Below are positions 32,655 through 49,511 of a DNA stretch of 64,000 nt, one piece after another. The position numbers and the translations under genes were made by a program. The stretch's first letter is position 1; every line of letters starts with the position of its first letter. The DNA comes from Lytechinus pictus (lineage: Eukaryota). The notes beneath the pieces were generated by a model. That model saw only the letters and a program-made list of their open reading frames with translations. It had not been told where the DNA came from and ran no database searches. The stretch lies in NCBI RefSeq assembly GCF_037042905.1, contig NW_026974141.1, positions 10,540,001-10,604,000 of the forward strand. Direction: 5' to 3'.

Positions 32655-33188
32655 ATTAGCCTTTACACCAGACCTTTCCGTTGCTCAAAAGCATTTGGAG
32701 ACGTTTTGTGGGCTAGAAATAATAGTTTTCAACCATTTTCGGTCCGGATTTCGGGAAATTATGAAAATATGAATATTCCAAATGCAAAATTATGGAACGC
32801 TTCACAATCTTGTGTTCCATGAAGGATAATATTAGCCTACAAACCAGACCTTTTCAATGCCAAAAAATGCATTTGAAGTTGAAGACGTTTTGGGGGATAA
32901 AAATGTTAGTTTTTAACCTTTTTCGGTCCGGATTTCGGGTAATTATGAAAATATGAATATTCAAAATGCAAAATTATGGAACGCTTCAAGATCTTGCATA
33001 TCATAAATATTGATATTAGCGTTTCTATCAGACCCTTTCAATGCAAAAATAATTTGGAGACACTTTTCGGGCTAAAAATGTTAGTTTTTAACCTTTTTTG
33101 GCCCGGTTTTCGGGAAATTATGAAAATATAATTATTCAAAAATGCAAAAATATGGAACGCTTCACGATTTTGCGTGTCATCCTTGCGC
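32655..33188 (-). repeat. Three tandem ~180-bp units, each containing the U6 3' end plus its downstream flank
   Basis: Units start with ATTAGC at 32655, 32831 and 33015. AAAA(T/A)TATGGAACGCTTCA occurs at 32786, 32970 and 33146. Confidence 0.88.
33146..33188 (-). ncRNA. U6: U6 snRNA, 3' part (nt ~65-107)
   Basis: Reverse complement reads GCGCAAGGATGACACGCAAAATCGTGAAGCGTTCCATATTTTT. Confidence 0.95.
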
Positions 33189-33224
33189 CTGCTACATCTC
33201 AATCTTTTTCATTTTTATTGGAGC

Positions 33225-33444
33225 CTGCAGCCAATGACGTTGCCCCGTTTGCCAACAAAAGGAACAACATATGGGCCAGCCGACCAATCAAAGGCGTCCA
33301 TTCGGCATCTTTCCGTCCGAATCGTCTGCCATAGATCACGTCATAGATCACGTGTCACCACTACTTCAAATTGCTTTCTGACGAAGATCTCTCGAACTTC
33401 GAACGAAAGTTTTTGCCGACCTTCTTCTGCAATCAATTTGACAG
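33225..33444 (+). promoter_or_regulatory. Candidate transposase promoter and non-coding first exon
   Basis: CpG-richer patch with CCAAT boxes (~33231, ~33284), a duplicated CATAGATCACGT with an E-box, and a possible donor GACAG|GTAATT at ~33443. Confidence 0.35.
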
Positions 33445-33920
33445 GTAATTTTACCTTTTCTCATGCCAATATTAGTGTTGAATGCTGATATGATTGTTAC
33501 TGCAGAAATTCTGATAACTCTTGTTATGTTTTGATGTGCCATTAAGTGAAAAATTGGATGAAAAATATGACGAGTTTGTCGCGGTTTGTCAGTTGGAGTG
33601 CACTGACGAGTGATAGCTATTGTTTTTCACGTGTATTACAATGGTCGATTTTCACGCGTGTGTGGTGATGAATTGAACTGGTTTGAACTCTGATTGAATT
33701 ATTGATTAGTTAATACCTATACTAGTAACGGTCTGTGGAGCCTAATCCAAATCCGGTGATTAAGTATTGAGTGTTGTGATGTATTAATATCTACCCGAGA
33801 TCATTATTTGTGTCAAAGGCGTGTGTAGGGGATTGTCTTTATTTAGCTTGACTGTGTCTGTGACTTGTGAGAATTGACTTGAGTTTGATCTACTCTCAAC
33901 TTCAAGTATCATACCTCTGG

Positions 33921-34065
33921 CTACCTCAAGGCCAAGTGATGTTCGTGCAGGATCCACTCCACTTCTCTACCGCTACACTACGCTAGGTGGAGCGTAGACG
34001 TATGTAGCGGTAGTGAAGTGGAGTGGAGCCTGCACGAACATCGCTTGAGCCCGAAGTTGAGGTAG
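33921..34065. mobile_element. Hairpin MITE inside the Dada element
   Basis: Near-palindromic CTACCTCAA...TTGAGGTAG; CCTCTGG duplicated at 33914-33920 and 34066-34072. Confidence 0.7.
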
Positions 34066-35335
34066 CCTCTGGCTAACGTCAGTCTTGATGCCTGATGGTG
34101 GGGGAGGTGTTGACTTAACCACCGTGGAGCACTTAACAACATATTTAGGTGGTACGGGGATGGGCCGCTTTGAATGACCCCCCCTTTTCAGTTCTCTAGA
34201 CTAGATGCTTCATGACAGAATTCTATTTAGATGCCGCCCAGCCCCGGTCGCAAGACCCCCATTAGGCCTTACGAAACATGTCAATGCCCAGACCTAGCCC
34301 TGCCAAAATTGTCCAGTGAGAGCTGCATGCTCGCCTTCTCAACCCACTCCGCTTAGCACCGTAAGCGCCCATACATGCACAGCAAGTGTGCACCGTACCC
34401 CCTGTACCGCGATCCCGTTCCGTCACGCTGCCTGGAATAGAGTAGATAGATCTATATTTAGTTCCCAAGACCGTGTATTTTACTCTTGTCAGTTCCTCAG
34501 GGTGTTGTGAGGCATCCACACCCCCATCTAAACATAATTTTAGTGCCCACCCCCCCCCCCCCCTCCCCATTGGATTTAATTTACAAGATCAAAGTTTAAA
34601 AACTCATTCAATGAAGAAGGTTGTGATTTTCTGTTAACTAGGACTCCTTGTGTGGGAAATGAAGTGGGTAATGTTTGCTTGATTGTTTTTTGCATACTGC
34701 AGTTTGCAGTACAACTAGATATATCATCATTTAACTTTGCTCTGAAATAAATTGAATTATTTCAAAAAAAAATTGTAATGAATTAAAAATTGTAATTGTT
34801 GACTAATACCAGTTATGAAAGTGTTACATCACACTTATTGATATATTGTATGTCCATGTGCAATTAATTCCTTTAAAGAAGTGGAAATTTCATAAAAATT
34901 AGATGTAAATAAAGTTATGACATTTAATATTTTTGCTTAGTATCACAAAACAGTAAATATGCACAGCCTGATCGGTATGGAAATGAGGGGGAGTGATGAC
35001 TTCATGAATTTACTTTTTATTTTGCTTGTAAATACATGAAATATGAAATTTATCCATTTTAATTTTGAAATGAAGTTTTATTCCTCCTGAGCATGTGAAA
35101 TTAACATTGTTTTAATATTTGTTGGTTCAGCAAAGTTAGATGTGGCCTGTGATTCCTGCTAATAATTGTTTTTGTATGTTTTTCTCTTTCTTTACCTCTG
35201 CAGCAATCTCCATAGACATTTGGCGGCCATCTATTTGTTATCTGTTTCGTAGTCAGTCTTTGTTTTGTCTTTCTTGTGTCTCTGTGTGTGTTAGTACTTT
35301 TGTTCTTTTCAGGTCTTTGAAGGAGGGAGGAAGAC

Positions 35336-38300
35336 ATGTTCGAGCCAGCGTTCTTCTACAAAGGCAACATCCTGAGGTTGGGGGATTCAGATAGAGCCAG
35401 AGCCTTCACCAGACCAGAGGGATTCAAGGTACGCCCAGCTGTAGAAGTTGAGAAGGAGGCCAAGAGGGAGGTCCAACGCCTTGGTGGAGACCCAAGTCAT
35501 CGTGTGTCTGTGCTGGCCTTCTCCAGAGTGCAGTTTGGCAAGTACCCAGGACAGACCTTCAAGTGGCTGGTGGAGAATGCCCTGGGATGGTGTGCCGAGT
35601 TGATGTGGAACATGGAGCGGACTGGGGAGAAGTTGGACCCAAAGAGAGACCAGTCCGTCAACAAGTTTGCCCTTAAGGAGTACATCACAGCATTTCCTGA
35701 AGGGTGTGCCGCTGTTGAGATGAAGAGGAAGAAGGGGAAGCGTCAGACAGCAGGATGCAGCCAGAGTGAGAGTGGACGACCTCCAAAGACTGGATCCATG
35801 AAAGATCAAGGTAAGTCATTTTTTATTTAAATTTAATTAAATTTATATTAGAATTTTGAATAAACGGAAATGGGGTGCAAAGAATTTGTATGTTCGTTAG
35901 AGATGTGTAGGAATCCTTTTTATTGAAGTTTATTTTAAAGGTAAAATTATAGTAGATGCTGCAAACAGTTATTTCATGAGAGAGTCTTTGAAAATAACCT
36001 GTATATACTGGTCGGTCTGAAATAGCCCAGTTAAGATAGGGTTAATGTTAATTGCCACAATATTATCATAGATCTACATGTAATAAATTTAAAGTAACTT
36101 TGTGAAATCATGAAATCTTATCTCAAAACCAATAATTCTAACGATCAGTAGTGAGAAGAATGTATATGCGGCACAGTGTATTGATAATGTTTTTAAAATG
36201 CCCAACATATTTTATTTAACTCTGCTTATTTTGCTAATTTATCACCAATGACACATTTTTTTTCCATTAGCTATTAAATGTCATTTTAAGATTGCAACCA
36301 CAAGTGGTGTTTATAGCGTTAATAAATAGAATGATTGTTCATGAATAGAAATTGTTAATAAATATAATTTAATTGTTAATTGCAGTGATGCCACTTATTA
36401 TAGCAAGCTCTCTGACAATTAAGTCATTGGTGATAACTTTCATAAAACATTCCTTGGGATATTTATGACCAAATAGCATAAATATTGACAGTGAATGAAT
36501 ATTAAAATATTAGGTTGATATCAATATGAACTTTATACTTCCCCCAATAGGTGAGGGACAAGTTTTCGATGATGACCTCACTGATGCTCAGTTGATTGAA
36601 GCATTTCTACAACGTTCCTCCTTAGATTCTGCAGGTGCGTATTGTATTATAAGTTAACACATAATGTAAATTTTGTATTGGTCTTTCTTGAAATGGCTTT
36701 GCTAAAAAAAAAACCTACTTGTAATTGAAAAGAGGAGAGGAATGCGAGAGAGCAATAGAGGAGGTGTATAAAATGGAAGAAAGAGAGGAATTTGAGTAAT
36801 GTAAAAAACAAAAACAAAGTAAATATATTAAAGCATAAAAAAAAGGAATTCATTAAAAATTCCATCAAAGCTAAAATGTAGAACATACTCTTCATTCAGT
36901 GTTTTTATATTGTAATGTGTTAACAGGAAATGTGAATGCTCATATTATTTCACTGATCACTTTTTTGTATTTTTAAGAATTTGAATATCCCTCTCCTCTA
37001 ATAATCAATGTTTTGTTTTGTTTTTTCCTTTTAGAAGCCACTACATCAAGAAAAGTGACTTCAACATGCAAGAGAGCAGTAGCAGATGACGGAGATAAGA
37101 CAGGTAAATGTGGTTCATTTTTTCTTTTCTGGACATTTAACTTATGGGACAAGAAATATGTACTGCAACCAATCTAATAAAGTCCAACACTAGATATAAT
37201 TTTTTGTTAGTGTGCACTACACGTGTGGTTATTGAGAATACCTTGAAAGCATTGAAATAAATACATATGTTTCTTTATAGTAGAGACTGTCTTCCCTTGC
37301 ACCTGCCATTTAAGATTGAACTTTTTTGCACGATTAGTGTGAACAATGATTGGATGACACCTACATAGAGAAGAAGTAGCTTGATAATGTAATAACTGTA
37401 ACATTACTTGTACATTATTAGAAGACAAATATTGTTTTCCTTATTTTATTTGCCTTTATTCTCCTGATTTCATTTTTCAATGTACCAGCATGTTACATTA
37501 TTATGATGTGACTTGAATCTCTTTCAAAGATTAATATATCTGTATATTCGTCTAAATTATCTTTGTACTTTTTTTTCCAGAGTACCTCCTGACCGAAGGG
37601 TGGAAGCAGACACTACCACGTCAGGATCATCAGTGGGTTTCACGTGCTTTGTTCAAGGTGTCAGCCCGTGGGAAGCCTGAGTTTGACATGCAGAAGATCA
37701 ACACACTTTGGTTCTTCCCACCTTTACCACAGTTCGCTCAAGGCCAAGCTCCAAAGCCAGCACGTTACTTTGCGACCAAACTGCTGATGTGGATGCCTCG
37801 CAAGCTTTGGGGATTGAAGATTCTTTGTCCCAACAAAGAATGCAACGGTCAGGAGCTGTTATCAGCCGGTGTCTACTCCCATGTGCGACAGGTCATGGAC
37901 ATTGATGGATTCTACAACATGGGTGCTGAGTACCTGGAATGCAGAAAGTGTCACAAGAAGTTCATCAGTTGGAGCAAGCCCATCTTAGACCAACTGGACA
38001 CCAGTCACCGGCTGTCATTCCCGGTCTTGCTCACATACAGGTTAGTGAATATCTTGTCAATATCCAAAGAATATTCCTTTATTTCTTGTTTATGTATAGC
38101 TTTTGCATTGCTTTATTATTATAACACAATTCATATGTCATTGTATTTCTGTTAATTTATTTCTTAAACTTATTGTTTTCAAACTATTTAATTAATTAAC
38201 GTCATTGACTTATTATTATCATTATCTTGTATTTCCCAACTTTGCTTACCTAATTTGTAATATGAAAATACTTTACACTTTACATTTCCTTTCTTGTTTG

Positions 38301-41300
38301 TTAAATGATTAATTATGTTAATGTATGCTATTTGTCAAGCGCTTAGATACATCATGTTAAGCGCAATATAAATACAATTTTAATTATTAATACTTTACTT
38401 CATTGCACCCTATACTGCTATAATGCGATATTTCAAAACCATATGACAGACATATGACAGTGATATACTGATTCCTAAATTTCTTCTTTTTGCTACAGAG
38501 GTGCTTGTGACAGGAAAATCATCGGGATGATGCGGGACAGGACACTTGGCAACGGACCATTCCAGATGATCCGCAAGCTCAAAGAGGTCCACACCGATGC
38601 TTGGCTTGCAAAGACTGCCCAGTATTGTTCTGTGGTTGAGGAGTTCGTCAATGCCAGTGAAAGGGGCCTCATCAATCGACCAAACTGCCCACCACCGCCC
38701 GCAATGTCTTCTCTTCCCACGTATCGTTGGCTCCTGACGGTGTACTGCAACGACGTGCTGGAGCGCATCGATGAAGTGAAGGCTAGCATCACATCTACAT
38801 TCGGCCGTATCCTCAAGATGGACTCGACCAAGAAGGTGAACATGAATGTGCTATTCATTTGATGTAATATCATCTTGTGTAACAAAATGGTTAACTTAAA
38901 AAATTCAAGAAAATGGGTGATGAACGTTTGATTACAATCAACCACTTTTAAGCATCTAATTCTTTTATTGTTGCTTGTGTGGTTTAAGTGGTGACTGACA
39001 GCAAAAACATTACACTTTAAGGACTTTCAATTAAGACTTTGATTAATAATTGTAATCTCATTCCTGTTTGTTTATCAATGTTTCTTTACTTCCTTCATTT
39101 CTCTGTATAATATAAATGTGTATGATTGTATAAGATACTTGAAATTCATTCCATTTCTGAAATTTATCTTTTCATCACAGATCACAAGGAAACTGAGAGG
39201 CGAGTCAGCAGGGACTGCTGCTTGGGCATCCAACGTCGGCAACGAGTACGGACAAGTACTGATGTCCGTGATGACTGTTGGCGAGGGAGCCGGTCTCTAC
39301 GAGATGATCAAGGGCATCCAGAGACGGTATGCAGCAGCCGGCCAACCTAGACCAGAGCTTCTGTACGTGGACAGAGGCTGCTGTGGTGCGGAATCCAGGA
39401 TCTTCAGGGGGTGGCCAGACATGCCTGTCCGACTTGACGTCTGGCACTTCATGAGGAGGCTTGCTAGAGGATGCACCAGCACTGAGCACCAACTCTACCC
39501 GTTCTTTCTGAGACGGTTGTCAGCCTGCATCTTTGCATGGAGCGCAGACGACCTGAATCAACTCATCGCCGCAAAGAGAGGTGAACTCAGGGACCAATGC
39601 ATCGCTGAAACTTCTGATGAGGTCATCCTGAAGCACCTTGGAAAGAGCTCGATCGCACGACACTGCAGACGAGTGACCAGAGGAACGGAGGAGACTACCC
39701 AACTCATCGGAGATCTCTTGGCTTCCTTGGATGGCGAGGGAGGACATGACACACTCGGTGTTCCCCTCTTTGACTCCGACAGAGTGTGGGAGATTTGGGA
39801 CTCACAGCAGAAACACATCGCATGCCTACAAGATCCACCAGATGTCCAGCTCTACACCAAGATAGGAGAGTCAGTGAAAGGTGGCATCACATTGCCTGTG
39901 TACAGATGTGCTAGAGGGTCAACATCGCTGGAGTCCTTCCATCTTCACATGAACCGGTTCATCCCTGGTAAGTTCATGTCTTATATCACTTAAAGTGTTG
40001 TAAAACAAGTGTTATAAAATCTGTCAATGTAAGATCATGCTGATTCTTCACCATCATGTCACTATTTGGAGCATCTTTATTTCTACAGGTTTCTGTCTAC
40101 ATTCCTTTTGTGTATTGCAATGGATACATTTCATAATACATTCGAAATACTTTGTTCATTTCATTTTTCAGGGACATCAGCCAACAATGTCCACTTCCAG
40201 GCCTACCTTCTTGAGGGGGTACATCGATGGAACTGCGATCGTGCAAGGGATGCTGAAGCTGCCACTGCGCCTTCTCACGCATCATATGGCACCTACAATG
40301 AGTACGATGTCAACCGGTTGACCGAGAAGCTGTTCGGACTTAAGATCAACCCTACTCTGACTGCACCCCAGAAACACACAGGTATGCCAATGCCTTTTCT
40401 ATTGTAGTCCATTCATATATGACTCCTAATGGTCTATGAGTTATGTCAATATAAAATGCATTGAACTGATGAAATGAATTATTTTGTTATCTCAATTTTA
40501 ATTCCATTTATTCAAAATTTATCTAGATCTGTATTCCTTTCTTTCTGTCAATTTATTTGTTACAGGGGAGCTTATCGGCCTGGAATATCTCTTCAACCAG
40601 ACCAACGAGGAGCTACTTCCCATGCATCCTGATGAAGGGGAGGTAGAAGATGATGATGGCGAGGACGTAGGACGTCGGGAAGAAGAGGACGTAAAGGACC
40701 CGACTGAGCCACCCCCGGAGTTTGGAGTAAGCCCTGCTTCATCCCGACGTGCCTCGAGAGTGTCAAGCCAGCAATCAGTACCACAGCACGTTAGCAGTGA
40801 GTATTTCCTATATTTTCAACGACTTTTCTTTGATTGTATTTTCAGGGAGTCATTACTACGAGCTTTACTTCAACAATTTATTCCATGACAATTGGGAACT
40901 TACACTGCTGCTCAGATGTTGTTGCAGTCCAAACACATGCTGTATCTTTTACTTTTTTATTTCTTTGTAAGACATTGTACCATTTTTGGATCAATGTATT
41001 CTTCATTGCTAAATTAAATAACAATTCGATATACCTGCAAAAACACAATAATAAATCTTCCGAGTGACTTCCCAACATTAGAAAATATTTCTATTTCTTC
41101 TATCTCATTTTACCTACAGCAACACCACAGAAACACAGATCACAGAGATCATCACTGCCGGTTCCATCCACCAGATGCAGACCCCACACATCCAAGGCAC
41201 CGGCAACAGTATCACGTGCTCCAGATTCACCACCACCAACTTCAATTCACAGAACATCCACAGCACCAGCAACTGTCTCCCGGGCACCCGATTCTCCAAG

Positions 41301-43562
41301 GGATGACACACCGGATGGTGGACCACTTGCTGGAGATGAAGAAGTGAAGGATGTCGAAGATGTGGATCTTAGAGAAGAGTCCGACGTAAGAGAAATAATT
41401 TGTATTTTTATAATGCTTATTTCATTCATTTATTTATTATAATAAATGAATAAAATGAAATAAGTATGAATGATTCATTTTAAGTGTCCATGGGAAAAAA
41501 TAATACATGTTATTGATGGCTTCATTCAGAACAAGTTGGCCTGAATAATTAATTTATTTTAAGATGTTATCTTTTTTCTTGTCTTACATACAAAGCTTGC
41601 ATTTAAAAATATTATTTATTTCACTTTTTTTGATTTGATGTTCCTGTTATAATCACTAGTCATTTTATAAATGGATGGCTATAGAAAATGACATATAGAT
41701 TGTAGTCACACTGTTTATCAATGTGCAATTCTCTTTTGTTAATCCCATCATATGCATTGTCCTCTTTATTGTAATTTTACTTTTACAGGAGGAGCACACA
41801 GGTCGCAGACCAGGTTACGACCGTGTGCAAGCACTGGGGAACTACCTCCTCAAACTCAGAGGTGACGAACATCTGATGAGCTCCAGGGACTCCAAACAGA
41901 TCGTGAAACTTTGGAGCGAATTGGATCCATACGACCAACAAGTGAGACGCCCGGCCCGTCACCAAGAGAAGCTCACCAAAGGACGCTTCAAAGCCAGAGG
42001 AACATCTCCAGTTGTCCCAGGCATAGAGAGTACTCAAAGGTATGTACATTCAACTCTATTAATTTTTCTGGGTGATTTATCATGATGCAATCATGAGCAG
42101 CCTTCTTGTCTACTTTGCAAAGATATAGAATAAAAAAGAAGTATCTCAACTCGCCGATATTGATTTCATTCATCACATTCCAGTTCTTCGTTTATATCAA
42201 TCACCTTATTACTTTCACTTACAGCAATACAACCAGCAGTTGAAGTGTGCTGTACACGATTTCTTGATGTATTTTTCTATCATTGTATATTTTTTCCTCC
42301 CCTCGTACAGATGCTTTCTTGGAAGTAACTCAGGACCCGCCTCCGTACCCAACGCCAACAGGGTTATGGAGTATGTCATCGGTCAGCTCTGCAGCTACTA
42401 CCCAGAGCACCAGAGGCACAAAGGGAGAGTCATTCCCAGGTGGACCACTATCATCCATGACTACAAGAACATTCGAAGCAGGGTCCTGGCCTCCACCCAC
42501 ATAACATCCAACACCCGCCTACAATTGTTAGATATCAATCGATATGTCCTCATTCAATGGTAAGAATATTGTAAAATGAGTTAAATTTCGAGCACTTGGA
42601 AATTTCTTTTATTGAATTGAATTGATTTCTTTTACATACTTTGGAACATACAGATAATTAATATGGTATATCAATCATACCTGAATTAAATAATACAGCA
42701 ATTTGAAATCAAAGACAATTTAAAATATAATGAATTAGATGGAATCATTGAAAGCAATTCAATGGCATCACAATTTTATTTGTAACAATTTATCTGTGTT
42801 ATTACAAAGTATTTCAAATGTAGCAATAGATCGTATCTTTAGCAATATCTATCTCCCTATGAAATACAGCCTGTCTAATGGCATTTTTCTTTCTCTTCCT
42901 TTTCTTATTTCATGTACAGGCATAACCGAAGATCTAAAGAAGAGGAGAGGAGTGCATTGGAGATGGGAGCTTCGGCACCTAGACCTAGCATGACTGCCCA
43001 CCAATCTGTCCCACCACCAAAGGAGAAACCACATGCCTTGCCACCACCTCCCATCCAAAGGCCCTACCAGTTCCCGATGGTTTCCAACACAGTTGGTCAG
43101 GCAAAGATGAGAGCACCAATAGCACAACCAACATTTGTTCTGGTTCCTGTTCCTGTAATGGCCGTACCATCAACCCCTGTGTCCACCCCTGCCCCAACTA
43201 CAGTCTCTGTCCCTGGATTCCGGTCCATCCAGCCTACACCTCCAACCTGGCGGCCCAGTGTACCACAGCCGAGTCTACCACCACCTTCATCACTCCCGAA
43301 GTCCACCCATTACAACAGGAAGCGCAGAGCACAGCAACGACTCGAAGGACAGGTTTCTACCAAGGTTTACAAGGCCCGGAAAGGTCCGATTGTATGCAGC
43401 CAGTGTCATCAACCAAGGGATCGAGAGACTCACACTCAATATTATGGCAGCTGGTATTGCGAGACATCCCAGAACCAACCCTTGGCTGAATGGAAGGCGA
43501 TGATGTCAGAACGGCGACTAGCAAAGCTGAAAGCTGACAAGGAGGAAGCCAAGAAGGACTAG
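35336..43562 (+). CDS. Dada DDE transposase, 12 coding exons, ~1353 aa
   Basis: Exons with GT-AG boundaries and consistent phases: 35336-35810, 36551-36634, 37035-37103, 37581-38040, 38499-38835, 39181-39967, 40172-40381, 40566-40796, 41120-41385, 41789-42039, 42311-42559, 42920-43562 (4062 nt). Motifs: CPxxxC..ECRKC, KMDSTKK, YVDRGCC, RLDVWHF (DxxH), RGSTSLESFH and a C-terminal CxxC..H..C. Confidence 0.88.
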
Positions 43563-44665
43563 TGCAGTGAATAATATGTTTATCAAGACGGCAGAAGTCG
43601 GGTCGCCGGCGACTAAACTGGCGCCACCTACTGGAAGCTATGCCAGTAGGGAGGGGGATTAAGACCTCCTGCAGGATGAAAAACAAGACCTGTTAAAGTG
43701 GATCATTGCACCAGTCAGGCACAAGCAACATCGTATCTATGGATTTAGGACACACTAATGAGAAACCAGAGGAATGAGAAAAATGGAATGAAGATTGCTA
43801 ACCTTCAAGGAGAGAGGAAACAGTATAGGTAGAAAGAGGAGATTGTGGGCAGCTTCATATGAAAAAGGGTCAAACATTCATTGAGAAATAAGGACAGGTT
43901 TTAAAACAACAGTGAAAGACCATCTGGAAGATATAGAACATATTACAAAAATTGTTAGATGACAACAGCGGCAGCAGAATAGTGAGGAATCATTGCAGAA
44001 ATTTTCAAATTCAATACAACTACGAAAGCAGATGGGATATTTCAGCAGTTTTCGAGAAAAGCTACAATCTGATAGAAACTCATTTTCACCGCCACAAAGT
44101 ACCCCGAGGAGCTCTGGTTCTTGCAATCATTGAGCATCTCGAGTGGTGACTCAAGTTATATCGACATTCACGACGTCTCAGTGCTATAGTACGATATCCA
44201 TGATGGATAAGCATTGAGGACTTAGTGGAATGTGCAACAGAATTTAGTAACAATGAAACATGTTAAGAAAAATAAATGTTGGATGTTATACAACAAAGTA
44301 CTGTACCTTAGACAAGCAACTCCTAAGGTGACTATTTTTTCCGATCGTTCACGGGTATCCTTGTGAAGCTCCATATTTAATATGTTGAGCATCATTTGCG
44401 ATGACTTTGTGGAGCGGTCTCTTAAAACTAGTGTGATAATGTCAACTAGTTTGGTTTTTAATGCTGCCAAGACATTAACCAACTTTCTTCAAACTGCCAT
44501 TCAAATTTGTTGAAAATTGGTTGATGTTTTGAAGGTCCCAAGCCCTTGTCAAAAGCAGAGGGAAAACCAAGTAATGCTTCTTGAAAAATCCCAGGAGAGG
44601 AAAAGACGTAGGAAAAGAGAGAGATTAAAAATGATGGGGGAGGGATTTACAACCTTTCGGCACTC

Positions 44666-45100
44666 GCATCCTTCTTGTATAAATGTGACTTAATACCTTT
44701 TTCCACACTCATAAATGGGATTTACTACCTTTTAGCACTCGCACTCACAAATCTTAATGACTTCTTGAAAATAATTATTTTTAAAAATGTGACTTGCTTC
44801 CTTTTGGTATAAATGTGACTTAATACCTTTTTCCACACTCGTAAATGGGATTTACTATCTTTTAGCACTCACACTCAAAAATCTTAATGACTTCTTGAAA
44901 ATTATTATTTTTAAAAATGTGACTTGCTTCCTTTTGGTATAAATGTGACTTAATACCTTTTTCCACACTCGTAAATGGGATTTACTACCTTTTAGCACTC
45001 ACACTCAAAAATCTTAATGACTTCTTGAAAATTATTATTTTTAAAAATGTGACTTGCATCCTTCTTGTATAAATGTGACTTAATACCTTTTTCCACACTT
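44666..45100 (+). repeat. 130-bp tandem repeat, ~3.3 copies, in the Dada 3' region
   Basis: Units start at 44666, 44796, 44926 and 45056. Confidence 0.9.
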
Positions 45101-46104
45101 ACAACTACATATATATATATATATATTATATATCATTTTTTTTTTTTTATTCATGACTAAACTACAACAAATCTTTTGAAAGGTTTATTATTTATTCCCT
45201 GGGGAAGGAGAAATAGGAAAGAAACTTTTGCTTCAATTATAAATTAATAAAGAAGGCATTAATGAATAAAAAAATGAATGAGTAAATGAATTAATGAATG
45301 AGTCAAGGAATGAATGAAAGAAATAATAANNNNNNNNNNNNNNNNNNNNNNNNNNNNNNNNNNNNNNNNNNNNNNNNNNNNNNNNNNNNNNNNNNNNNNN
45401 NNNNNNNNNNNNNNNNNNNNNNNNNNNNNNNNNNNNNNNNNNNNNNNNNNNNNNNNNNNNNNNNNNNNNNNNNNNNNNNNNNNNNNNAAATGAAGGATCT
45501 TTCTCTCATTCTATTTCTTTTTCATTACTTTATCCCCCCTAACCCCCCCCCCCCCCTCTCTCTCTCTAATCAATAAATTTGAAAAGACAAGATATATCTT
45601 TCCTTCCATTCTTTCATTTTCTATTTATTTATTTATTTATTTATCTATCTAATATTCTTCTTATTTATCTATTTATTCATCTAATATCTATCTATACATA
45701 CATATCTTTGTTTATCTATATCTTTGTTTATCTATTAATTATTCTGTCTATCTACCCCCCCCCCCCCTCTCTCTCTTTCAGAAGTGAAAAATACAATGAA
45801 CACAAACATAAATGCAAAATACATTCATTTCATTTCAAACAAACTGCATTTATTAAAAAATCAACCGTCATTACATTACAATAAAAATCGTGCCTAAAAT
45901 GTCATTATTTACTTTCTTTTTCCCCCTCTCCGGCGTTCCATACGCCCGAACCCGACCGATTTGTTTTCAAACAAGGCTCCATTTCCCACGCCAGCGATGG
46001 CTCCGCCCCCCTTCTATGGCAGACGATCTGCCCAAAAATCCACAAAACAGCGCCGGCGTGGGGGCCTATGGGACGCGGGGACAGAGAAGATTAGTCGGTA
46101 GCTT

Positions 46105-46117
46105 TTGCGCAGGGGCC

Positions 46118-46149
<32 letters not shown>

Positions 46150-46174
46150 ATAGATGTGTTGCCGAAGCGAACAC
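46105..46174 (-). ncRNA. U6: U6 snRNA, 5' part (nt 1-70)
   Basis: Reverse complement reads GTGTTCGCTTCGGCAACACATCTATTAAAATTGGAACGATACAGAGAAGATTAGCATGGCCCCTGCGCAA. Joined to the 3' part with one TSD removed, it gives 107 nt. Confidence 0.96.
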
Positions 46175-46199
46175 GACTATGTCAGGAAACCTCTCTCAA

Positions 46200-46257
46200 T
46201 TTAAACTAGAGCACATGTATTTCAAACTCTACACAGTTAGCGCGCCAGCACCACGTG
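46200..46257 (-). promoter_or_regulatory. U6 type-3 Pol III promoter: TATA-like box, candidate PSE and E-box
   Basis: TTTAAA at -26 to -31, candidate PSE around -52 to -69, and CACGTG at -78 to -83. This matches the TATA-like + PSE + USF E-box layout known for sea urchin U6. Confidence 0.75.
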
Positions 46258-49260: not shown

Positions 49261-49419
49261 AGGCCATGCTAAAGCCCCTTTCACAATTGCTAGTGCGACT
49301 TGCTACAACCGTTGCGATTCTGTGCAACATAATATTGTGACCAAACGATCGTACGAGCAATTGTGAAAGCCCCTTAATCTTCTCTGTATCGCGGCTCCAA
49401 TTTTAATATATGTGTTGTC
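49261..49419 (-). pseudogene. U6: Truncated U6 retro-fragment (nt ~12-62), split by a 102-bp MITE
   Basis: GGCCATGCTAA [MITE] TAATCTTCTCTGTATCG..CCAATTTTAATATATGTGTTG; flanked by GCATCCAGTC(GT/AC)AGG direct repeats at 49246-49260 and 49420-49434. Confidence 0.75.
49273..49374. mobile_element. Small Harbinger-like MITE with TAA TSD; related copy at ~49093-49205
   Basis: CTTTCACAATTG...CAATTGTGAAAG inverted ends; TAA at 49270-49272 and 49375-49377. Confidence 0.75.
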
Positions 49420-49511
49420 GCATCCAGTCACAGGACTGGTCTCTGTAGGTCACTAGCGCACGAGTCGTGGAAGTGTTTCACGACCTCCAGCCGACTAGGT
49501 GCGACTTCTTA

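Follow-up and report, generated by a model that had tools for sequence, protein, structure and literature searches.

At the left junction of a transposon that is inserted in a U6 snRNA gene of Lytechinus pictus, 14 nt of the element are complementary to the U6 sequence around the ACAGAGA box, and we argue that this complement is probably a repeat by which the element mimics its target at the DNA level, with the hybrid RNA that is predicted to arise across the junction being an unselected by-product rather than a device of the element. The window in which the junction lies is the whole stretch of 64,000 nucleotides that was analysed.

The proposed course of events is as follows. Each end of a Dada-U6 element would carry the word CAGAGAAGA at 14 bp from its terminus, the U6 gene having the same word at 14 bp from the insertion site, and the transposase may read the same word in its own ends and in the target, as was proposed by Kojima and Jurka. 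With the end inserted beside its target, an interrupted palindrome would be formed at the left junction, which necessarily follows from the placing of a word-bearing end next to the target. The split gene would probably still fire from the intact upstream promoter words, and the resulting U6(1-70)::Dada RNA, ending at either a T4 or a T5 run with a length of 131 or 141 nt, would fold into a hairpin. As the fold-back comes from the published target-copying repeat, the hybrid RNA is most likely a by-product.

The Dada-U6 insertion in the U6 gene

The 5' part of the split gene, U6 nt 1-70, lies at 46105-46174 on the minus strand, where Rfam gives an RF00026 match (46174-46105, model positions 1-68, 70.6 bits as compared with the gathering score of 44), and it is 100% identical to the intact canonical U6 of the same genome. 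The match ends with GCGCAA (46110-46105, U6 nt 65-70), which is one copy of the target-site duplication, and the bases directly after it on the minus strand, AAGCTACCGACTAATCTTCTCTGT, are element sequence. The 3' part, U6 nt 65-107 with its own T5 terminator, lies at 33146-33188 on the minus strand and starts with the second copy of GCGCAA (33188-33183). The 6-bp GCGCAA is therefore present at both junctions, with the two U6 halves, nt 1-70 and nt 65-107, flanking the insert. The first-pass annotation had described U6 nt 1-70 running into element sequence and then reaching a T4 run at 46044-46047 and a T5 run at 46034-46038, which is borne out by the sequence and by Rfam.

To judge from its sequence, the insert, which occupies 33189-46104 on the minus strand, is a complete Dada-U6 DNA transposon, as it agrees with the published description in insertion site, in the 6-bp duplication, in orientation and in end sequence. 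Dada-U6 was described by Kojima and Jurka with the same site, duplication, orientation and ends (PMC3706591). The duplication in Dada-U6 is GCGCAA or GCGAAA, the insertions occurring only in U6 nt 65-70 and in one orientation, and the transposase is directed opposite to U6 in all the described families except that of Capitella. The present element is like the published ones in having the site at U6 nt 65-70, the GCGCAA duplication, the transposase opposite to U6, no long perfect terminal repeats and TCTTCTCTG at 14 nt from the left terminus, with the same word at the same distance in U6. It differs from them in that the left match to U6 is 14 nt long, that the right copy has only 5/9 matches, and that its 12.9 kb are beyond the published range of 4.7-11 kb. 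Note that 12,916 bp is the length as assembled, with a run of 158 N (45330-45487) present inside the element near the 3' region of the transposase.

The multi-exon transposase gene spans 35336-43562 on the plus strand, as delineated by pieces of open reading frames and by Pfam, which, with the exons scanned one by one, gave DUF6729 only, on two exons (1e-47 and 8e-19). By eye, a DVWH (DxxH-type) motif can be seen after a D-containing block in the piece at 39118-39993 (+), and Cys/His clusters can be seen as Cys pairs in 37649-38155 and as C..C..H..C in 42912-43562 (+). The AATAAA at 45880-45885 (+) is likely the poly(A) signal of the transposase. The element is well preserved and was probably recently active.

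At the ends of the element, no long perfect terminal inverted repeats are present, only 13 of the 24 first positions agreeing between the two ends by eye, and the two ends of the window's lineage have GCTAC and AATCTT blocks in common. The left end carries the repeat word exactly, at 14 nt from the duplication, with the match to U6 extended to 14 nt. Its counterpart at the right end, TGAAAAAGA (33203-33211, minus strand), is degenerate, with 5/9 matches to CAGAGAAGA at the canonical distance of 14 nt, and is identical in a diverged copy. A second sub-terminal inverted repeat, ATCGTCTGCCATAGA, is located at 46013-46027 on the minus strand, 78 nt from the left end, and its partner at 33321-33335 on the minus strand, 133 nt from the right end, the two being an exact inverted match of 15 nt.

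We also note U6-like sequences in the window. Rfam scores a stretch that joins the terminal 51 nt of the element's right end to the U6 3' half (33146-33239, minus strand) as a full-length sub-threshold U6, with 39.6 versus 44 bits. In the same right end, the AATAAAAATG and AAGATT blocks resemble U6 nt 24-33 and 46-51, respectively; these blocks could be either decayed target-like sequence or a matter of chance in A-rich DNA. An isolated fragment at 49375-49420 on the minus strand, with ACAGAGAAGATTAA, corresponds to about U6 nt 11-53 at 87% identity; it has no adjoining 3' part, and the split U6 gene is 3.2 kb downstream of it.

The U6-type (type 3) Pol III promoter of metazoan U6 genes is located wholly upstream of the gene, with the internal sequence not needed, and has a TATA-like box at around -30 and a proximal element at around -55 to -65. 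In the window, this upstream region (46175-46257, minus strand) contains a TATA-like TTTAAA at -31 to -26 (46205-46200) and a PSE-like CTAACTG, conforming to the word YYAACYR, at -66 to -60 (46240-46234). Both words are present at these positions in 6 of the 7 promoter-bearing U6 genes compared, namely the intact canonical gene, three variant genes and the occupied copies of the window and of C21:5.36 Mb, with YYAACYR at -66 or -67 and the TATA-like word at -31 to -29; they are weaker at the occupied copy of C7. Neither word was found in the same comparison upstream of a U6 retropseudogene that has a poly-A tail. That the external promoter is intact, as the first-pass annotation had it, thus holds at the sequence level, TTTAAA at -31 and CTAACTG at -66 being as in the intact genes, and it is because the promoter is wholly upstream and its words are intact that the split gene would be expected to fire.

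In a search of the assembly with canonical U6 DNA, one intact canonical gene (C18:14849201-14849307) and three canonical genes split by Dada were found, plus fragments, so that three of the four canonical-type U6 loci are occupied by Dada-U6, where the gene counts are lower bounds and arrays may have collapsed in the assembly. Because of this occupancy, a considerable share of what the U6 promoters put out could be hybrid RNA if junction RNAs exist. In addition, there are three identical variant U6 genes (C2:21564484-21564592, C2:21576121-21576229 and C6:16101906-16102014), in which TTGCACAAAG replaces TGCGCAAGG and which have a different 5' stem-loop, good promoter words and the CAGAGAAGA word kept. 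These genes have no GCGCAA site and might be immune to Dada-U6.

The junction complement and the predicted hybrid RNA

The U6 segment ACAGAGAAGATTAG (nt 41-54; 46121-46134, minus strand), which contains the ACAGAGA box, would be the 5' arm of the predicted helix, and the element-derived CTAATCTTCTCTGT (46081-46094, minus strand), which is the left sub-terminal repeat of Dada-U6, would be the 3' arm. Read on the minus strand, CTAATCTTCTCTGT (46094-46081) is the perfect 14-nt reverse complement of ACAGAGAAGATTAG (46134-46121), so that the left junction has an interrupted palindrome with arms of 14 + 14 bp and 26 nt between them. The 9-nt core of the repeat begins 14 nt from the duplication. The repeat is invariant in 5 genomic copies. 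With RNAfold, the 14-bp helix is present in the minimum-energy structures of both the 131-nt RNA (-40.7 kcal/mol, z of -3.66) and the 141-nt RNA (-43.3 kcal/mol, z of -3.18), where the z values are relative to a background of dinucleotide shuffles. The earlier claim that 14 nt of the element pair with U6 over the ACAGAGA box is hence confirmed as an exact complement and as a predicted helix. Note also that covariation is impossible to see in this helix because its U6 arm is invariant.

The complement itself is not special to this RNA, being the sub-terminal repeat already published for Dada-U6 (PMC3706591, PMC8869645). The repeat TCTTCTCTG/CAGAGAAGA has a 9-bp core, TCTTCTCTG, that is common to all the Dada-U6 families, it has been reported at both ends of the elements, and its word is present in U6 at the same 14-bp distance from the insertion site, for which a function in target recognition was proposed (PMC3706591). 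The same arrangement of end and target, with ATTGCAC, is present in Dada-U1, whose targets are Pol II genes (PMC3706591), and a survey of 2022 has it that Dada recognises the primary DNA sequence (PMC8869645). There is no mention of Pol III read-through, of a hybrid RNA, of a hairpin or of a terminator in this Dada literature, which deals with the repeat at the DNA level alone (PMC3706591, PMC8869645). The inverted match is thus already known, and the RNA-level reading of it appears to be undescribed, in agreement with what the first-pass annotation had supposed of its own idea, no such transcript being present in the same literature.

Two T-runs that may serve as Pol III stops lie within 58-71 nt of the junction. 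The first is the T4 run at 46044-46047 on the minus strand, corresponding to RNA nt 128-131 and giving the 131-nt RNA, and the second is the T5 run at 46034-46038 on the minus strand, corresponding to RNA nt 137-141 and giving the 141-nt RNA. The T4 run is present only in the three near-identical copies, CTCC being in its place in the two diverged ones. The T5 run is invariant in the 5 copies of the lineage, the two diverged ones included, and the native U6 genes of the same genome also end in T5. The T5 run belongs to the terminal 170 nt or so of the element, which are conserved nearly throughout, and, as the second inverted repeat of 15 nt comes just past it, it is inside DNA that resembles an end-recognition region. 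The T5 run was considered as a conserved terminator and set aside as uninformative, most of the terminal 170 nt being equally invariant and the second inverted repeat abutting the run.

That both the inverted 14-mer and the T-runs are mere coincidences is hardly credible. Runs of T4 or T5 are common in any DNA, and the first T4 of the window is at the 25th percentile of the background waits for T4. Against this stands the 14-mer, for which, with at most one mismatch allowed, 0.01 chance matches are expected per window and 3 were found, and which is invariant in the five copies and located at a fixed distance in about 10 families. Chance is rejected for the inverted repeat; it is adequate for the T-runs.

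An alternative to the by-product reading is that the fold-back is kept by selection, as it would disarm the free ACAGAGA box of the 5' U6 fragment and thus lower the cost of the insertion to both the host and the element. We consider this to be unlikely, though several observations speak for it. The complement at the left end is perfect and is longer than the published 9-nt core, the right copy having decayed, and this left-right asymmetry, with 5/9 matches at the right and 14 perfect nt at the left, would be in keeping with a function of the left junction at the RNA level. Moreover, 3 of the 4 canonical U6 loci are occupied with the promoter words kept, and in each of the families folded the predicted helix includes the whole ACAGAGA box with a probability near 1. 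It is also to be noted that the copied word would be a functional single-stranded site for both U6 and U1, the ATTGCAC word of Dada-U1 being what we take to be the U1A-binding loop of U1. On the other side, we know of no harm that is caused by a U6 fragment without the 3' part. In addition, for an element with a specific target, no words make better DNA anchors than the most invariant ones of the snRNAs, and this would give rise to the same coincidence. In other families, moreover, both ends are reported to carry the word, as is the case for U1 targets that are transcribed by Pol II.

Dada-U6 copies and families compared

In the genome of 811 Mb, two further copies that are 98-99% identical to the window's element at both ends are present at C21:5.36 Mb and C7:27.80 Mb, together with one copy at 83-88% identity and one fragment at 78%. 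The two C21 copies lie in an inverted segmental duplication, the flanks of which are 94-97% identical and thus less alike than the elements. The split U6 halves are identical among the three occupied copies; with the elements 98-99% identical to one another, only 1-2 changes would be expected, so that this identity is uninformative on purifying selection.

The left ends of the two diverged copies (L004, C7:27836056, and L005, C7:27910585) are flanked by non-U6 DNA, and the right end of a diverged copy (L009) adjoins GCGCAA followed by non-U6 sequence. These flanks resemble the one-ended or rearranged insertions of the 2013 paper (PMC3706591). A search with the DDE exon gave more distant Dada copies at C18:14802053, C18:14103393 and C12:13747767, with amino-acid identities of 88%, 60% and 54%, respectively, and the 20 kb around each of the three contained neither a U6 nor any other Rfam small RNA, no tRNA, and neither of the words of the left and right ends. 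A tandem array at C18:14833058-14837926 (L010-L014), with a period of about 1.1 kb, is 77-79% identical to positions 33280-33495 of the window, matching the right sub-terminal region. The only intact canonical U6 is about 11 kb away from the array, and the transposase copy at C18:14802053, which has one in-frame TGA, is about 31 kb away.

Metagenome contigs were scanned with a pattern consisting of the U6 end, 12-16 free bases and TCTTCTCTG, giving 18 contigs (L029-L046) with about 10 distinct left junctions of Dada-U6. The gap from the word to the duplication is exactly 14 nt in all of these junctions, though 12-16 nt were allowed, and the complement to U6 is 10-14 nt long. When the hybrid RNA of each family is folded, the core helix has a probability of about 1 and covers the whole ACAGAGA box, where the hairpin in every family is partly by construction because the search pattern required the word. 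For the same reason, the set shows the constancy of the distance and of the fold rather than independence, families without the word being invisible to the pattern. No right junction was found in the 18 contigs, and no contig appeared to be human.

The distances from the junction to the first T4 are 45, 45, 58, 58, 67, 77, about 102, 129, 156, 160, 194, 410 and 492 nt, and within one closely related family (L037, L039 and L041) they are 58, 410 and 492 nt. Against a background of distances to the next T4, measured from other points on that strand of these elements, the first T4 is at percentiles from 0.09 to 1.0, with 7 of 12 being above 0.5. The position of the terminator is therefore neither conserved among families nor earlier than in the background. 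The first-pass annotation had proposed that related families be checked for a conserved hairpin and terminator: all of them could form the hairpin, which is partly owed to the pattern having required the word, and the terminator distance, at 45-492 nt, is not conserved. This lack of conservation or enrichment in the position of the terminator also counts against the selection of the fold-back for disarming the U6 fragment.

In 9 of 11 families, position 24, past the required word, is T, which would pair with the leading A of the ACAGAGA box. The next positions (25-30) have no match to U6 and are, in most families, rich in C, so that the conservation extends beyond the RNA pairing. The variants at the helix edge are A to T in three families, A to C in one, T to C in two and A to G in one, being mostly mismatches rather than changes that preserve G-U pairs. 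The running of the conservation into non-pairing bases and the edge substitutions having no G-U preference are both points against selection on the RNA fold. With the edge mismatches and with the first T4 spread over 45-492 nt and unenriched, neither the structure nor the transcript ends were found to be conserved beyond what the DNA function entails.

The terminal 14 nt of the promoter-side end have a consensus among about 11 families, AGGATGGYGCGCAA, which agrees in 12 of 14 positions with U6 nt 70-83, the native sequence that comes after the insertion site and is displaced by the insertion. In the window's lineage (46091-46104) the agreement with U6 nt 70-83 is weak, at 6/14. As the terminal 14 nt resemble the displaced U6 sequence, the left junction would rebuild a near-native context of the internal stem-loop. 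The anatomy of the ends thus seems to suit a protein for which the ends and the surroundings of the naturally palindromic stem-loop at the insertion site offer similar half-sites. A simple model in which the whole left end mirrors the U6 5' flank in register was rejected for the terminal 14 nt, as none of the positions 4-6 and 8-10 matches in any of 11 families.

Possible roles of the hybrid RNA

It might still be considered that the Dada repeat serves twice, being recognised as a word in the DNA and acting in the RNA as a safety catch that locks the copied word of the truncated snRNA, that is, the ACAGAGA box and possibly the U1A-binding loop, in a hairpin. We regard such a double use as quite improbable. 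Points that speak against the by-product reading are, besides the left-right asymmetry, the T5 run that is invariant in the five copies and the occupancy of 3 of the 4 canonical loci, by which the hybrid RNA could reach an abundance of consequence.

Another proposal is that the hybrid RNA is a regulatory or targeting RNA by which, for instance, the transposase would be led to U6 genes or its expression would be controlled. We consider this very improbable. In its favour are the layout, with target-derived and end-derived sequence in one predicted RNA, and the T5 run that is conserved within the window's lineage. For a control of expression, however, the predicted stop comes some 120 nt past what is likely the poly(A) signal of the transposase, so that the hybrid RNA would not overlap the transposase mRNA. 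For a guiding function, the tenfold variation of the terminator distance between families is a point against, and we know of no eukaryotic DDE transposase that uses a guide RNA. Moreover, the targeting of Dada is explained by protein-DNA recognition (PMC3706591, PMC8869645). In short, the neutralising, regulatory or targeting role that the first-pass annotation had suggested found nothing in its support.

The arrangement may be compared with several known systems. The R2/R1 retrotransposons are alike in being target-specific elements in a multicopy RNA gene, with a hybrid RNA made from the host promoter, that of 28S rRNA, and R2 depends on the co-transcript, from which it frees itself by a ribozyme. 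Here, by contrast, the transposase is antisense to U6 and the predicted Pol III transcript ends about 60-70 nt into the element, so that the U6 transcript would bring no gain of expression to the element. The U6-promoter shRNA cassettes are alike in the order of U6 upstream promoter, hairpin and oligo-T stop. The predicted hairpin differs from them in its 14-bp stem, 26-nt loop, 40-nt U6 leader and tail of 37-47 nt. The processing of shRNA needs a stem of roughly 19 bp, and 14 bp is too short for Dicer-type processing; the predicted hairpin is thus below the stem criterion (about 19 bp) of shRNA- or miRNA-like Pol III hairpins, and its short stem with the 26-nt loop is a further point against a regulatory RNA. 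The bridge RNAs of the IS110 family are alike only in layout, being non-coding RNAs from an element end with target-like and end-like sequence; they belong to a bacterial serine-type DEDD recombinase rather than to a eukaryotic DDE transposase, and their RNA architecture is different.

With the 14-nt complement read as a target-mimicking repeat of the DNA and the hybrid RNA as its by-product, the present insertion adds a further genome with Dada-U6, and the structure of its ends confirms and sharpens the published picture, the word being at a fixed distance of 14 nt in about 10 families and the terminal 14 nt resembling, in most families, the U6 sequence displaced by the insertion. Dada-U6 is present in zebrafish, Daphnia, oyster and Capitella, for all of which public RNA data are available. 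Junction RNAs, should they exist, would be a naturally occurring hairpin transcript of a U6 promoter. If, in addition, the hairpin is protective, it would represent a novel means by which a transposon keeps down the harm of its landing in an essential gene family, and it would also be relevant to the plans for targeted gene delivery based on Dada.
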